A stretch of DNA of 64,000 bases from the sequence record MF459647.1; one strand, written 5' to 3'. Positions 7,316-26,603 of the stretch are shown here, piece after piece. Made by a program: the position numbers and the translations under genes. The notes beneath the pieces were generated by a model. It was not told the origin of the DNA, searched no databases, and saw only the letters and a list, made by a program, of their open reading frames with translations. The stretch's first letter is position 1; each line of letters starts with the position of its first letter.

Positions 7316-7687
7316 ATGGAAAAAGCACAAAACATCGAAAAGGGTCTTTCCTTTGGGCAAGTCATTGAACGCATGAAGCGTTTTAAAGGCGAAGCAGCAC
7401 TGCGCGCTTGGGGCGACAAAAAGGAATGTGTCTTCCTGGTCACTCATCATGATCTCTGCACGAAACTGGGCTACGGCTACGGTGAAGTTCCCGGGACGGC
7501 TTCTTTTGGGGATGCTTTGTGCAAATACCATGAAAGCGGTGAACTGGAAATGGGTTGGCGTCCGAGCTATGCTGAGATGGCGTCTAACGACTGGCAGTTT
7601 GTGAATTGCGGGGAACGCGATGACATCTATCGTAAATCCAACGACGCTGGCGAAGCTGGGAAAAGTCGTGACGGCTTTGCCGCCTGA
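7316..7687 (+). CDS. tad2: DUF2829 / Tad2-like anti-defence (immune signal sponge) protein
   Basis: N-terminal LSFGQVIERMK..ALRAW and C-terminal GWRPSYAEMASNDW match the DUF2829/Tad2 signature (F.eAl..lk....R.gW ... W.Ps..DmlA.DW). Confidence 0.7.
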   Translation: MEKAQNIEKGLSFGQVIERMKRFKGEAALRAWGDKKECVFLVTHHDLCTKLGYGYGEVPGTASFGDALCKYHESGELEMGWRPSYAEMASNDWQFVNCGERDDIYRKSNDAGEAGKSRDGFAA

Positions 7688-7812: not shown

Positions 7813-8727
7813 TTATGCGTGGAATTTGTTGTACAGCTGATGGAACAAATTAACCTGCTTATTAAAGATGTTGTATTCAAACGTAGCGTACGCAATCTTT
7901 TTACGGGCCAAATCAGCATATTCCTTCATGCGTTCGCGATAATTCTCCGTCAAGTCAGATTGCTTTAACACGGCCTCTATATCACTAAGGTTGCGTTTCT
8001 GATCGTCAATGACCTTTTGAACGTTTTTCTCATATTCAGAAAGATCTTTCTGTGTGACATGATTAAGTTTGTTTAAGAAGGTTGCGATGCCGGCGTGATG
8101 GAAAATATGCGGCAGGTTCTTTTTAAGCTCTGGAAGAGCATGTTCTAAACGGGTTTGAAGATGAGCAAGCGGTGAAATATACTTGATGTCGTTTTTCTTC
8201 ATGTACTCCGTGTAGGACGTATTCAACTCTTCCAGCTTATTAAGCCAATCTTCAATTTGGTTCTGTTCGCCACGGTAAATTGCAGTACGGCGTTTACTGC
8301 CGTCTTTCTTTACGATTAACACTTCTTTTTCTTGCGCAGCAGCTTCCTGTTCTTTCTTAAGCTCAGGGTCTTTTGCAATGATGTCATCTGATTGCTTAAC
8401 TTCCTCAGTGACCTCCTTAGCTCGCTCTTCCGTCTTCGCACCTTTCTTACCGGTGAAGACTTCTTTCAGCTTAGTCCACAGCGCTTCCATGGCTGTTTTG
8501 ATCGCCTGGTAGACTTTCTGTGCACCTGACTTGATTGTATCAAGCACACCCTCATTACCGTGGTAGTTGGAAATCGTTCCGCCGTAGGACTGCACAACAG
8601 ACTGCAGGTACTGCTGAGCGTACGTTAAGGAGTAACGCTCGGTACCGTCCACCGTATCAATAATGCCGGTGAGTAGGGTCTCAGCGTGGTCGCTGTCCAT
8701 TTCTTCGTAAACACCATCGAGTTGCAT
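7813..8727 (-). CDS. Proteolytically processed head/ejection protein, paralog of 5444-6508
   Basis: GIIDTVDGTE...YHGNEGVLDTIKSG aligns with GIIDTVTGTE...YHGSEGVMDTIKGG; late-type TATG on the minus strand at 8751-8754. Confidence 0.7.
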   Translation of the reverse strand: MQLDGVYEEMDSDHAETLLTGIIDTVDGTERYSLTYAQQYLQSVVQSYGGTISNYHGNEGVLDTIKSGAQKVYQAIKTAMEALWTKLKEVFTGKKGAKTEERAKEVTEEVKQSDDIIAKDPELKKEQEAAAQEKEVLIVKKDGSKRRTAIYRGEQNQIEDWLNKLEELNTSYTEYMKKNDIKYISPLAHLQTRLEHALPELKKNLPHIFHHAGIATFLNKLNHVTQKDLSEYEKNVQKVIDDQKRNLSDIEAVLKQSDLTENYRERMKEYADLARKKIAYATFEYNIFNKQVNLFHQLYNKFHA

Positions 8728-8774
8728 GATTTTATCCTGTTAGTTTAGTTCATAAAATTTCGCGCATATCTCCC

Positions 8775-8805
8775 CCTCCTTGCCCCGTCTTAGGGGGCAA
8801 GGAGG
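8775..8805. terminator. GC-rich stem-loop in a divergent intergenic region
   Basis: CCTCCTTGCCCC-loop-GGGGCAAGGAGG, 12-bp stem; no clear U-tract. Confidence 0.5.
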
Positions 8806-9044
8806 TATTACAGTATGGGAGGGACGAGCGAGGAATTACTAAACTGTAATAGGTATAAAACCCAGTTAGTTATTTTTAGCAACTATAAGGTTATCTACTC
8901 TGTAGGCTCTTAACCATTAACTAAAGGTTTAACGTTAAGGCGGTTCAGTTCTTGCAGATTAAGTAATTTTCTACTACGTGGTAATATACATATACCGGCT
9001 GTAATGATTTACCACTATAGCCATATTATATTTTTATTTTCTAT

Positions 9045-9075
9045 AAGTTTTCAAACCTGTACTATTAGGGTGAAT
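9045..9075 (+). promoter_or_regulatory. Phage early-type (virion RNAP) promoter
   Basis: AAGTTTTCAAACCTGTACTATTAGGGTGAAT; same motif family as at 12261, 14319, 21702, 31303 and 36232. Confidence 0.7.
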
Positions 9076-9125
9076 CTGAATCCCATATTTAGGTTCGTAA
9101 CTTAACTTTGAATAGGACTGAGAAA

Positions 9126-10637: not shown

Positions 10638-10646
10638 TCCATAATG

Positions 10647-10674
10647 CTACTCCTACCCAAACGGGTAGGAGTAG
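10647..10674 (+). terminator. Intrinsic terminator
   Basis: CTACTCCTACCC-AAAC-GGGTAGGAGTAG followed by a T-rich tract. Confidence 0.8.
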
Positions 10675-10734
10675 TTTACTTATATATTTTATGTTTTTTG
10701 TAACCGTCTCGTAAGTTTTTACCGACGGATTAAT

Positions 10735-11070
10735 ATCCTATGTATTTTCATGCTTCGCTCTTGTCTGTTTTGTCACTTTTAATCTCTTAAAATTACTGTA
10801 CACCACGGTAATTTTGGGGGGTAGGGGGGCAAACCAGAACAGGGGCAAACCAGAACAGTTTCGAACAGTTTTGAAAGTTTTGGGGCCGCCGCCCCAGGGT
10901 TACATAAGTTAACTAAGAGAATAAGAATAATTATAATAAATACATTAAGAGAATAAGATCAGATCGGATCCGGGAAAACGTTAATTAGCTAACTATCCTT
11001 AGGGGTAGTTAGAGAGCAAGCTTAACTATAGCCAAGGGTAGAGAGACAGAGATCGGGAGAGAAGCATACA
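10735..11070. other. Candidate replication origin / cis-acting locus
   Basis: Within a ~590-bp non-coding gap: hairpin 10789-10815, G6-TA-G6 at 10816-10829, tandem repeats, AT-rich stretch 10905-10960 with TAAGAGAATAAGA twice, and a switch from pyrimidine-rich to purine-rich sequence. Confidence 0.45.
10826..10857 (+). repeat. Tandem direct repeat 2 x GGGGCAAACCAGAACA
   Basis: Exact 16-bp tandem duplication at 10826-10841 and 10842-10857; GAACAGTTT recurs immediately after. Confidence 0.9.
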
Positions 11071-11225
11071 GGGATCCTGTTATAGGGAATACCAGTAATT
11101 CTTCATAGTGAGCTTTATAGTTATAACCAGATAATATGTCTAGGGTAAAGTCCCCTGGATATACATTACTTAATAATCATAATAGTTCATTTAAGATACT
11201 GTTATTGTAAGGATATAGCAAGTCA

Positions 11226-11714
11226 ATGAATACACATAGCAAGAAAGAGCTTCAGAAACAATTAGCTGACGTAGAGAATCAGCTGCTGGAACTGAACAAG
11301 AAGAAAGAGCAATTGCAGAAACAGTTAAGCCGAAAAGAGCTTATCCTCCCGTTCTGCGTAAAACGGAACGACAGCCAGATTCTGATGCAGGGTGGGGATG
11401 AGATGCCTGGCACGCTGTATGCGAATCTGCACTGCGCATTAACCCGGGAAGGGAAACGTATTACCCCGCTGAACTTAACGCGGCTGTGGGGCTTATACGC
11501 TATTACCAAGCAGTTTACAGCAGACAAGAAGGACGGAGCCTTTAGCCTGCAGACCAGCATCGGCAAGAAGTGGTACGTTAGCGTGTTCTGGGAAGGCAAT
11601 ACCCAGGTAGTCCGGTTACTGAAAGAAGGCACCAGCAAACCGATTCACGTTAACCTTAAGTACCGCTTTACGTTGAGCGAGCTGATTCTTTGCTTGGACA
11701 TCATGAGTCGTTGA
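11226..11714 (+). CDS. Hypothetical protein with N-terminal coiled coil
   Basis: 162 aa; heptad pattern ELQKQLADVENQLLELNKKKEQLQKQL. Confidence 0.65.
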   Translation: MNTHSKKELQKQLADVENQLLELNKKKEQLQKQLSRKELILPFCVKRNDSQILMQGGDEMPGTLYANLHCALTREGKRITPLNLTRLWGLYAITKQFTADKKDGAFSLQTSIGKKWYVSVFWEGNTQVVRLLKEGTSKPIHVNLKYRFTLSELILCLDIMSR

Positions 11715-12329: not shown

Positions 12330-13061
12330 ATGTCTACTTCCAATGCTAAAATGAAACCGTCTGTTCGCAAACTGTACGAAGATCGTCTGGTAAAAGCCCA
12401 GGACCATCTGGCAACATTAATGATTGCCCGGGATAATCTGCAGGCAGCTATTGAGCAGGCCCAGGACGACGTGGTAGGTTTGCAACGTACCCTGGCCGAC
12501 GATGAAGTGCTGGGTCGTCGCTCTTTTTATTTACCAACCGGTGAAGCAGCGACCAAACTTGCTCAGGGCATCGATGCCATACTGGCCGCGATCAATGCAG
12601 AGCAGCCTCAACCCGAGTCATGTGGAATGATTGCGGTGCCGTTCAGCTACATCAACGACATGTTGCAGCGCGCCGATGGTGAATCGGTTGAACAACCTGA
12701 GTTACCTGAGTCTGAGCAATTCATGACCATGACCGCACACGTTCCGTTTTATCGCGAACGTACCCAGAGTCACATGGATCGTTTAATGACGCAGCTTAGC
12801 CCAGCTAAACCCGCATCAGACACAGTATCCCGTACGGAACAAGCTCGAGCCATCGTGCAACAGCTGAATGTCGACGACATGTCCATTGCACATTATGTGA
12901 TTGAGCTGTTGGGCAACATGAAATACGACATTCCTCTTATCACGCCTGACAGAATCTGTGAACTGGCGGTGGAAAGGTTTGAAAATATTCATCGTCGTGA
13001 ACATTGCACGGTGATGCAAAACAACGGGGTCCGTTTCTACGTAATGACCGGTCGTAAATAA
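12330..13061 (+). CDS. Hypothetical early protein with coiled coil
   Basis: ATG at 12330 with AAGGA RBS; 243 aa. Confidence 0.7.
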   Translation: MSTSNAKMKPSVRKLYEDRLVKAQDHLATLMIARDNLQAAIEQAQDDVVGLQRTLADDEVLGRRSFYLPTGEAATKLAQGIDAILAAINAEQPQPESCGMIAVPFSYINDMLQRADGESVEQPELPESEQFMTMTAHVPFYRERTQSHMDRLMTQLSPAKPASDTVSRTEQARAIVQQLNVDDMSIAHYVIELLGNMKYDIPLITPDRICELAVERFENIHRREHCTVMQNNGVRFYVMTGRK

Positions 13062-13214
13062 ATAATTTGGCAGTGATATTATAACCCAGAAGCCACTGTG
13101 CATTATATGCTTAAGTGAGGACTGTGTGTTACTGGTACTTTCACTACCGGTAACGAATTGCCCGCCACTGCCATTTTAAAACCTATTTTGGGTATATGTT
13201 ATTGTTAGAAGATT

Positions 13215-13274
13215 TGAGAGTGCTGTTCACTTTTCCGTGGCACTCTCATTTTTATTTTTTTGTTTATTTTTTTT
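13215..13274 (+). terminator. Intrinsic terminator with long U-tract
   Basis: TGAGAGTGC...GCACTCTCA stem (13215-13248) followed by ~25 nt that are mostly T. Confidence 0.8.
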
Positions 13275-13294
13275 GTATGTGTATCTTATACGGA

Positions 13295-13465
13295 GAATAA
13301 TTACCTGAGTAGTTTGACTGCGAAAAGTTTCGGGTTCGCTCTGCAGCTGAATGTCAACAGCCAACACCTCAAACAAAATTTTCGTTATCATCATTTTAAA
13401 CGGATTTAGTCGCCACCACCGGGGAAGCCTGGGATTATCCGGTTAAACTACTCACATAATTCTTT
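13295..13465 (+). ncRNA. Putative ~170-nt structured non-coding RNA
   Basis: 13-bp closing stem 13306-13318/13442-13454, inner stems 13321-13330/13375-13384 and CGGAT/ATCCG; G-U pairs valid only on the + strand; TATG at 13276 upstream, T-tract downstream; no credible ORF. Confidence 0.6.
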
Positions 13466-13474
13466 TTAGTGTAT

Positions 13475-14254
13475 GTTATACACAACCGAACTGAAGCACC
13501 ATAGCAATCTGGACTCGTCGCCTAGAGCTGCGTTTGACTTTTTCTTTAAACCATGGCCTGGCTTGTTGAGTAACCAACGGCAGACTTTGGGTTGTCTTGT
13601 TCAGTCTATTGTGCTTCACCCCTTTACCGTTTTCAGCGCCTGATGTGATTCCAGAGTCGGGTTCCTGCTTTTGTTGAAAACGGTCCTTCTTGCCGGTGCT
13701 CTCTGCACTCACGGTGAAATCTCCATTTACCACGCCCCCTGATTAGGGTTTCGGAGAGTACTGGCAAACCTTTCCTCGGTATGTCGTTTACATGTCTGCG
13801 CTTAACCTTTGTGAGAGCGCGGGGCGCATGATTCGGCAACCCTGGTTACGAGCACTTTATATCTTTCTGCTCACAATCCCTCCCTCAGGCACATGGCCGG
13901 GAAACGGAGGGTCCATCTGATGTGCAACGGAGACGGGTCTGTTGAACTTGCGCGAAAAGATACGGGCTGCCTTTTAATGTGTAATCCCTCAAAGCGAATG
14001 TGGGAGATAGCATCCAGACCCAAAGGCGGTCAAGTTGTTAAAACAAGTAGCCCGAGAATGAGAGGGCGAACGGAGTATGCAGCCTGTTGGCTAGCTCGGG
14101 AATTGAGTCGACCGATACCCGAATTGGCCAATGGAGTGTTTACTTCAGACGGTGACACTAGTGGAAGCATCAGTCGGTGATGCAACTGCAGCGGAAAACA
14201 GACAAAGCTTATTTTTCTATCCTTTAGTTACTCTTGGCCTAGGCCAAGAGTAAC
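13475..14254 (+). ncRNA. Putative large (~740-780 nt) structured non-coding RNA
   Basis: Consecutive long stems 13492-13504/13606-13618, 13626-13636/13674-13684, 13690-13703/13754-13767 plus many hairpins; GC-rich island between AT-rich flanks; TATG at 13472; ends at the palindromic terminator 14227-14254. Confidence 0.6.
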
Positions 14255-14260
14255 ATTTTT
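14227..14260 (+). terminator. Perfect 28-bp palindrome terminator
   Basis: GTTACTCTTGGCCT|AGGCCAAGAGTAAC followed by ATTTTT. Confidence 0.8.
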
Positions 14261-14318
14261 CTATGTTTGCTATTTTTATTTTTTCACTGATTGGCTAAGT
14301 ATATTAGCGGGACCCTAA

Positions 14319-14349
14319 AGATTTTTACCTCTATATTACCAGGGTGTAT
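14319..14349 (+). promoter_or_regulatory. Phage early-type promoter of phuZ
   Basis: ATTTTTACCTCTATATTACCAGGGTGTAT; contains the TATATTAC core known from phiKZ early promoters. Confidence 0.8.
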
Positions 14350-14388
14350 AGGCAACTGCAATTAATCCATTTAATCAAGGAGAAGTAC

Positions 14389-26455: not shown

Positions 26456-26603
26456 AGTAGTTGAGGTGGGGTTTCCCACCTCTGTTTCCTTTGTTCTTTT
26501 ATTTTTAGTTTACAGCTGATTTCAGGTCTATATAGTTAAGGTGAATAAAGTAATAGAAACTTTATCATTCTCACATTTAACTATAATGAAAGGAATTGAA
26601 ATC

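Follow-up and report, generated by a model that had tools for sequence, protein, structure and literature searches.

The window analysed here comprises bases 1-64000 (64,000 nucleotides) of the genome of Erwinia phage vB_EamM_Joad (MF459647, 235,374 bp), a jumbo phage of the genus Risingsunvirus and a distant relative of phiKZ. The locus studied is the 588-bp gap between gp11 and gp12 (10638-11225), two genes of unassigned function that are both encoded on the + strand, with the gp12 ATG at 11226. Masking of open reading frames (ORFs) of at least 70 aa leaves about 10 kb of the Joad genome, and the gap is the longest such ORF-free piece in the 235 kb. A sequence-only reading had described a series of elements in this region, all of which were found again: a T-rich leader with TATG (10739-10742), a small hairpin (arms 10789-10799 and 10805-10815), GGGGGG-TA-GGGGGG (10816-10829), a perfect pair of 16-mers (10826-10841 and 10842-10857), repeated GAACAGTTT (10853 and 10863) and an AT-rich stretch (10900-10956) with TAAGAGAATAAGA twice (10914 and 10946). 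The described switch from pyrimidine-rich to purine-rich sequence was equally evident, with a purine fraction of 0.30-0.38 before 10800 and 0.60-0.75 after it. Scanning the gap for tRNAs and tmRNAs returned none, and an Rfam search at a permissive threshold gave two chance-level hits only (E 5-8, bit scores far under the gathering scores).

The neighbouring genes gp10-gp14 had no informative family or fold matches, and neither a DNA-binding protein nor a recognisable initiator was identified among them. A structure model of gp12 (pLDDT 76) gave no informative match in a PDB fold search, and gp11 had no match in the protein atlas. Further upstream, gp7 (7316-7687, + strand) is annotated as a putative thymidylate kinase, but its match is to PF11195, the Tad2-like anti-Thoeris domain (E 4e-9); it is gp6 that contains the genuine thymidylate kinase domain. 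Elsewhere in the genome, the thymidylate synthase gene is in two pieces, gp188 and gp190, split by the GIY-YIG homing endonuclease gene gp189 (162758-165001), an arrangement suggestive of an intron that carries a homing endonuclease. Downstream of the locus, a second large and mostly non-coding region lies upstream of phuZ (13062-14388); it spans 1.2 kb without called genes in three related contigs (L010, L011 and L013) and has a T-rich TATG near 13272-13284.

Among cultured phages, a DNA search in distant mode and protein searches with gp11 and gp12 recovered Joad and RisingSun only. A degenerate pattern of the conserved sequence gave 108 hits in IMG/VR and JGI metagenomes, all of them attributable to chance and none accompanied by the flanking motifs. 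Joad-like DNA, either near-identical or related, was present in public runs from groundwater, food, fermentation and root samples, and additional genomes were obtained by seeking gp12 and gp11 homologues in Logan and ENA assemblies. These included a 235-kb food-metagenome contig (L010) with a gp12 57% identical to that of Joad, three contigs (L011, L128 and L130) with a gp12 67% identical and three RisingSun-like contigs (L013, L014 and L125). Two Logan contigs from Salmonella enterica isolate assemblies, L126 (~233 kb) and L127 (~149 kb), are close Joad relatives (gp12 at least 90% identical, gp11 ~52%) whose proteins were deposited as Salmonella proteins, which suggests that a Risingsun-like jumbo phage was carried by, or contaminated, Salmonella cultures. 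About five independent lineages stand behind the comparisons reported here.

The gap was retained in every relative found, at 565-640 nt and with unchanged site and element order. Between Joad, L011 and L010, nucleotide identity across the parts of the gap was 63-85%, compared with 59-72% for the coding DNA of gp11, gp12 and gp13; as the gap is at least as conserved as its flanking genes, the whole of it is under constraint. Recurrence of the architecture in all relatives found also indicates that the features of the locus exceed chance. The sequence-only reading had proposed conservation as a check, and here the outcome was favourable: the sequences change, yet the double G-run and the two identical 16-mers were kept in every lineage. 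Overall, the comparisons support the view that this is a control locus which is non-coding, conserved and unique. In the vicinity of the gap, Joad and RisingSun share 97-100% identity; inside the gap, they diverge in two patches (10743-10850 and 11010-11060). Two genes flanking the locus, gp8 (7900-8400) and gp14 (12470-12950), also contain patches with an identity of only 58-80% against this 97-100% background, the result of mosaic replacement.

Transcription of gp11 is predicted to end at an intrinsic terminator on the + strand (10646-10675; a 13-bp stem followed by TTTAC), the arms of which carry compensating changes in L011, L010, L126 and L130. Two promoter-like sites follow on the same strand. 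The upstream site, P1 (10675-10693), is T-rich with TATG at 10690-10693 and is conserved in all relatives. The second site, P2 (10716-10742), combines TTTTTACC (10716-10723; -26 to -19, centred around -22 from G10742) with ATATCCTATG. Its TATG motif was invariant in all lineages, as was TTTAC, the block TTTAC-N-ATATCCTATGT was invariant in alignment A3, and the spacing was kept in L130. In phiKZ, the late promoter consists of TATG with the G as +1, and middle promoters add AAanTTACc near -24 (PMC4666361). P2 contains such an AAanTTACc-like element and shares with the phiKZ middle and late promoters both TATG and an upstream TTTAC(C) at matching spacing, elements that are invariant in the Joad relatives, although phiKZ is a distant relative and the Joad start is a prediction from phiKZ grammar. 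A nearly identical arrangement precedes gp116 (122183-122207), and TATGT is 3.3-fold enriched in gaps. From the match to phiKZ grammar, this twin site and the enrichment, we infer a transcription start at G10742. The sequence-only reading had proposed a transcription-primed replication origin, and one part of that proposal is supported: a conserved phage promoter very probably drives rightward transcription of the locus into the G-tract.

RNA-library contigs from public runs span the gap at gene-like depth, which may be DNA carry-over. No consensus terminator was found between G10742 and gp12; CAG followed by short U runs after the long hairpin described below might serve as a weak one. No antisense promoter proved to be conserved either, the candidate CATA at 10903 being missing in L010. 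A sigma-70-like site (10909-10937) was rejected as it is not conserved and host polymerase is unused by these phages, and the small ORFs in the gap (an ATG within TATG and a 60-aa call in L011) were rejected for lack of conservation. Two other promoter-like words were noted in the genome. The first, approximately TTTTCA-N-yCTAyATTAyTAAGGTGAAT, recurs in about 20 gaps, at window positions 8728-9101 (right end), 14320-14343 and 26480-26540 and at genome positions 125043, 143041, 151773 and 225404, with a weak copy before gp12 (11163-11187); it probably marks early promoters used by the virion polymerase. The second, AAA[AT]TTAC (complement GTAATTTT), has 7 of its 14 genome occurrences in gaps against 0.6 expected, equals the published phiKZ middle-promoter word and is carried by both arms of the hairpin tip in Joad (10789 on the + strand and 10808 on the - strand).

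Immediately after the predicted start, the + strand can form a long 5'-proximal RNA hairpin (10747-10855) of 47 pairs, 11 of them U·G, with a 5' arm at 10747-10799, a loop at 10800-10804 and a 3' arm at 10805-10855. This hairpin coincides with a variable cassette. In four public runs, contigs are interrupted precisely at its edges (10743/10747 and 10852/10854), indicating that several alleles exist in natural populations, and six alleles were recovered, of which the four that were compared are 63-73% alike. Despite this divergence, the + strand of all six alleles folds into a single, nearly continuous hairpin of 42-47 pairs, with z-scores relative to dinucleotide shuffles of -4.2 to -7.7 for the + strand and -0.7 to -3.1 for the - strand. 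When arms were swapped between alleles, the fold was weakened in every case, by 4-29 kcal/mol (four alleles tested). Summed over the six alleles, the stems contain 212 Watson-Crick pairs, 53 U·G pairs, 6 A·C and 12 other mismatches, and the U lies in the 5' arm in all 53 U·G pairs. This polarity (53 U·G versus 6 A·C) is compatible only with pairing of the + strand; neither an inverted repeat bound by a protein nor a cruciform in the DNA would yield mismatches polarised in this manner. The pairing is thus strand-specific and kept through compensating changes, as expected of a structured RNA. By fold strength, the hairpin window ranks only 18th among the GC-corrected 120-nt windows of the genome; windows that fold more strongly with GC considered include those at genome positions 201091 (+), 192265 (-), 76921 (+) and 8731 (+).

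The hairpin accounts for much of what had been described as separate elements. Its 5' arm corresponds to the T-rich leader and its tip to the small hairpin, and G6-TA-G6, the first 16-mer and part of the second make up its 3' arm, so the switch from pyrimidines to purines is simply the passage from one arm to the other. The G-tract taken alone is misleading, as it is half of a duplex. On this point the transcription-primed proposal is not supported as it was put, since the G-tract is not free and is paired with the U/C-rich 5' arm in all six alleles. G6-TA-G6 (10816-10829, + strand) is mostly U·G-paired and unique in the 235-kb genome, whose two strands contain just 12 G6 runs between them. 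A double run of at least four Gs, 1-7 nt apart, occupied the same place in 6/6 alleles, and 41% of the paired U's in the 5' arm face G instead of A. In RisingSun, L011 and L010, a third G run lies 12-13 nt away from the others, and these three have only three runs (at least 3 G) in the arm; an intramolecular four-run G-quadruplex is therefore not conserved.

The two identical 16-nt units (10826-10857, + strand) overlap the G-tract, and the leader pairs with copy 1 and with the first part of copy 2. Four different unit sequences occurred among the lineages, and both copies were identical within each genome, an identity that pairing with the leader does not require. The 16-mer was not found elsewhere in the genome even at 2 mismatches, nor did the repeats, the leader or the G-tract have a further copy or an antisense target in the phage genome when up to 2 mismatches were allowed; a 14-nt complementarity to gp49 was at chance level and was discarded. 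The best-conserved block of the gap follows (10851-10897, + strand; ~85% identity). It contains AGAACAG, GAACAG and GAAAG, with a T run behind each of them at a period of ~10 nt, and then a GC hairpin (10882-10895).

Beyond the cassette, a consensus fold of nine sequences formed a chain of local hairpins in which 96% of cells were paired. Nine pairs were changed on both sides, versus 1-2 in slid controls, and the covariation score lay above all 500 shuffles, which gives moderate support to the downstream hairpins covarying as structured RNA. All are on the + strand. The consensus fold includes the GC hairpin at 10882-10895, which shows compensatory changes, an invariant ACAGG-GAT-CCTGT hairpin (11068-11080), an 11-bp hairpin (11135-11163; helix 11) with two pairs changed on both sides, and a final hairpin (11198-11223; helix 12) that holds the gp12 ribosome-binding site AAGGA in its loop and has one compensatory pair seen in 3 sequences. 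Outside the consensus fold, an inverted repeat forms a 10-bp hairpin with a TTAG loop (10989-11012) in the Joad and RisingSun folds; its counterpart in alignment A3 is a different stem with the same loop in L010 and a 5-bp stem with a GAAA loop in L011. Only the local hairpins can be considered solid, as the long-range helices obtained with five aligned sequences were not those obtained with nine.

A second variable patch overlaps the end of the TTAG-loop hairpin (11010-11062, + strand) and comprises a 25-nt insertion/deletion followed by GA-rich sequence. Two public runs (X2 and X3) carried the Joad-type cassette together with the RisingSun-type insertion, demonstrating that the patch assorts independently of the 5' cassette. 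Pairing between the leader and the GA-rich patch at 11034-11092, which is present in the minimum-free-energy fold of Joad, was rejected on account of this independent assortment in natural variants.

The gap also has unusual properties at the DNA level. The AT-rich block (10900-10956, + strand) is 84-88% A+T, holds five WTAAGW words and belongs to the 5-6 windows of 40-56 nt with the highest A+T content in the genome; the TAAGAGAATAAGA pair within it is found nowhere else in the genome, and the blocks of L011 and L010 have five TAAG words each in alignment A3. Next to it lies a cluster of five GATC sites (10957-11076), two of which are GGATCC. No other 130-nt window of the genome contains 5 sites. 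Genome-wide, GATC is two-fold depleted (458 sites, half of the expectation from base composition), and gp165 (150978-151772, - strand) is a D12 Dam-type methylase. Clusters of 6, 5, 3 and 4 sites are kept in relatives.

Given + strand hairpins kept across alleles together with downstream covariation, the gap is best read as a structured leader or non-coding RNA, and the evidence assembled here points first to a function at the RNA level. Specifically, we consider it somewhat better than an even bet (probability about 0.55) that the gap encodes a highly structured non-coding RNA of ~480 nt that leads the gp12-gp14 operon and possibly also yields a short 5'-derived RNA. Under this leader-RNA reading, the RNA polymerase of the phage would transcribe the leader from the phiKZ-type promoter, starting at G10742. 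The first ~110 nt would fold by pairing the U/C-rich 5' arm with the G-tract and the 16-mer repeats, and local hairpins would follow, the last exposing the ribosome-binding site of gp12 in its loop. The start site and the subsequent action of the RNA are both predictions; after transcription, the leader may protect the 5' end, direct processing or partial termination after the hairpin, or control translation of gp12-14. Such an RNA reading leaves unexplained the within-genome identity of the two 16-mers, the use of G over A opposite U in a double G-run and the clustering of GATC. The lack of an Rfam match, the 18th rank of the hairpin window, the shifting long-range helices and the small number of independent lineages also count against it.

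The proposed structured leader or non-coding RNA is previously undescribed, and its closest parallels are in other jumbo phages. Small RNAs derived from 5'UTRs, with conserved folds, were reported in phiKZ and 201phi2-1 (PMC11512511). These and the intergenic small RNAs detected by ONT-cappable-seq (PMC11512511, PMC10914365) resemble the Joad locus in having a promoter that leads into a conserved hairpin-forming leader and a secondary structure conserved across related phages. In contrast, the Joad leader has no sequence relation to them, lies in a different gene context and is known from sequence alone; it is also much longer (~480 nt), with a 45-bp U·G-polarised hairpin and no recognisable premature terminator. 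Other candidates, namely a CRISPR-repeat mimic, type III antitoxin repeats, a CsrA sponge, a 6S-like RNA and a retron, were judged unlikely, as unit length, motif conservation or partner genes do not fit.

An alternative that we regard as unlikely, yet worth weighing in detail, is a transcription-primed replication origin, in which the P2 RNA would be retained at the double G-run as a lasting hybrid or in an RNA-DNA G-quadruplex, after which the AT-rich block would open and the RNA would prime DNA synthesis, with the 5' arm able to sequester or release the G-runs. The locus shares the layout of an R-loop-type origin (promoter, G-rich RNA segment, AT-rich region) in composition and order only, and as in ColE1 RNA II, mitochondrial CSB II and T4 oriF, the promoter is followed by two G runs ~75 nt on and then by AT-rich DNA. 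ColE1 RNA II provides a further parallel, since there, too, the part that varies is the first ~110 nt of a folded RNA of ~500 nt. The Joad G runs differ from those of all three systems in being paired within the RNA itself, and a conserved antisense promoter is absent. As this pairing would arise in a stable hairpin as soon as the RNA is transcribed, it competes with a persistent R-loop or quadruplex; moreover, the canonical four-run G-quadruplex is not conserved and the sequence 3' of the G-runs is not G-rich. Placement of the double G-run in the same position in 6/6 alleles, although the partner strand is mostly U, nevertheless favours an origin, as do the promoter aimed into the locus and the standing of the gap as a unique and the largest non-coding locus. 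In the literature searched, no origin has been described for nucleus-forming phages.

Several of the DNA-level properties can be counted for an origin as well, including 16-mers that are always identical within a genome, in the manner of iterons, T runs at a ~10-nt period after the repeats, one of the 5-6 most AT-rich windows of the genome and the densest GATC cluster in a GATC-depleted genome with its own gene for a Dam-type methylase. The iteron origins of lambda and P1 likewise combine direct repeats evolving in concert with phased T runs, neighbouring AT-rich DNA and clustered GATC sites. Joad differs from these in having just two identical repeats at 16-bp spacing, in the strand-specific RNA pairing of its repeat region and in the lack of an identified initiator gene, and no recognisable initiator adjoins the locus, gp10-gp14 being without informative matches. 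RNA-type covariation is also seen further downstream and in part of the AT-rich block, which speaks against an origin. Cumulative GC and AT skew over the whole genome, a check suggested in the sequence-only reading, had no inflection at the locus; this missing signal counts formally against an origin but is uninformative, because the skew merely tracks the almost uniformly + strand coding. We consider it more doubtful still that the locus is the replication start of this nucleus-forming phage group and acts as a hairpin/R-loop switch. In such a switch, the G-run would either fold back on the U-rich 5' arm, allowing read-through into gp12-14, or stay on the template or in a hybrid quadruplex like that of mitochondrial CSB II, producing a primer beside AT-rich, GATC-dense DNA, and the identical 16-mers would be sites for an initiator protein.

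We think it improbable that the gap is a DNA site for a sequence-specific protein, such as a promoter operator, a P1-like pac site in which GATC elements respond to methylation, or a site for partition or anchoring close to phuZ, which lies 3.2 kb downstream. The two identical direct 16-mers with an imperfect inverted copy in the leader, five AACAG/CTGTT words and the GATC cluster, with TGATCA/G-like elements in relatives, would be in keeping with protein binding, and headful packaging was reported for these phages (PMC6034870). However, the mismatches between inverted and direct copies are nearly all U·G (53 versus 6 A·C), as expected of RNA pairing and not of a site bound as DNA, the terminase gene is 30 kb away and the neighbouring genes yielded no DNA-binding protein. 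A scar of recombination, or a spacer without function, between mosaic modules, suggested by the two Joad/RisingSun difference patches in the gap, which are like those of gp8 and gp14, and by the reassortment of alleles among lineages, is already disfavoured and scarcely credible, given that the length, order and blocks of the gap are kept though the flanking proteins are just 52-67% identical, that the gap is at least as conserved as coding DNA and that pairing is maintained by compensating changes.

Chimalliviruses transcribe and replicate their genomes inside a protein shell using their own enzymes. Within the Risingsunvirus group, no non-coding element is more conspicuous than the gp11-gp12 locus, which offers a predicted promoter, a well-supported RNA hairpin, natural allelic variants and oddities at the DNA level. 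With these in hand, it becomes directly testable whether the locus acts as a regulatory RNA, as an origin or as both.
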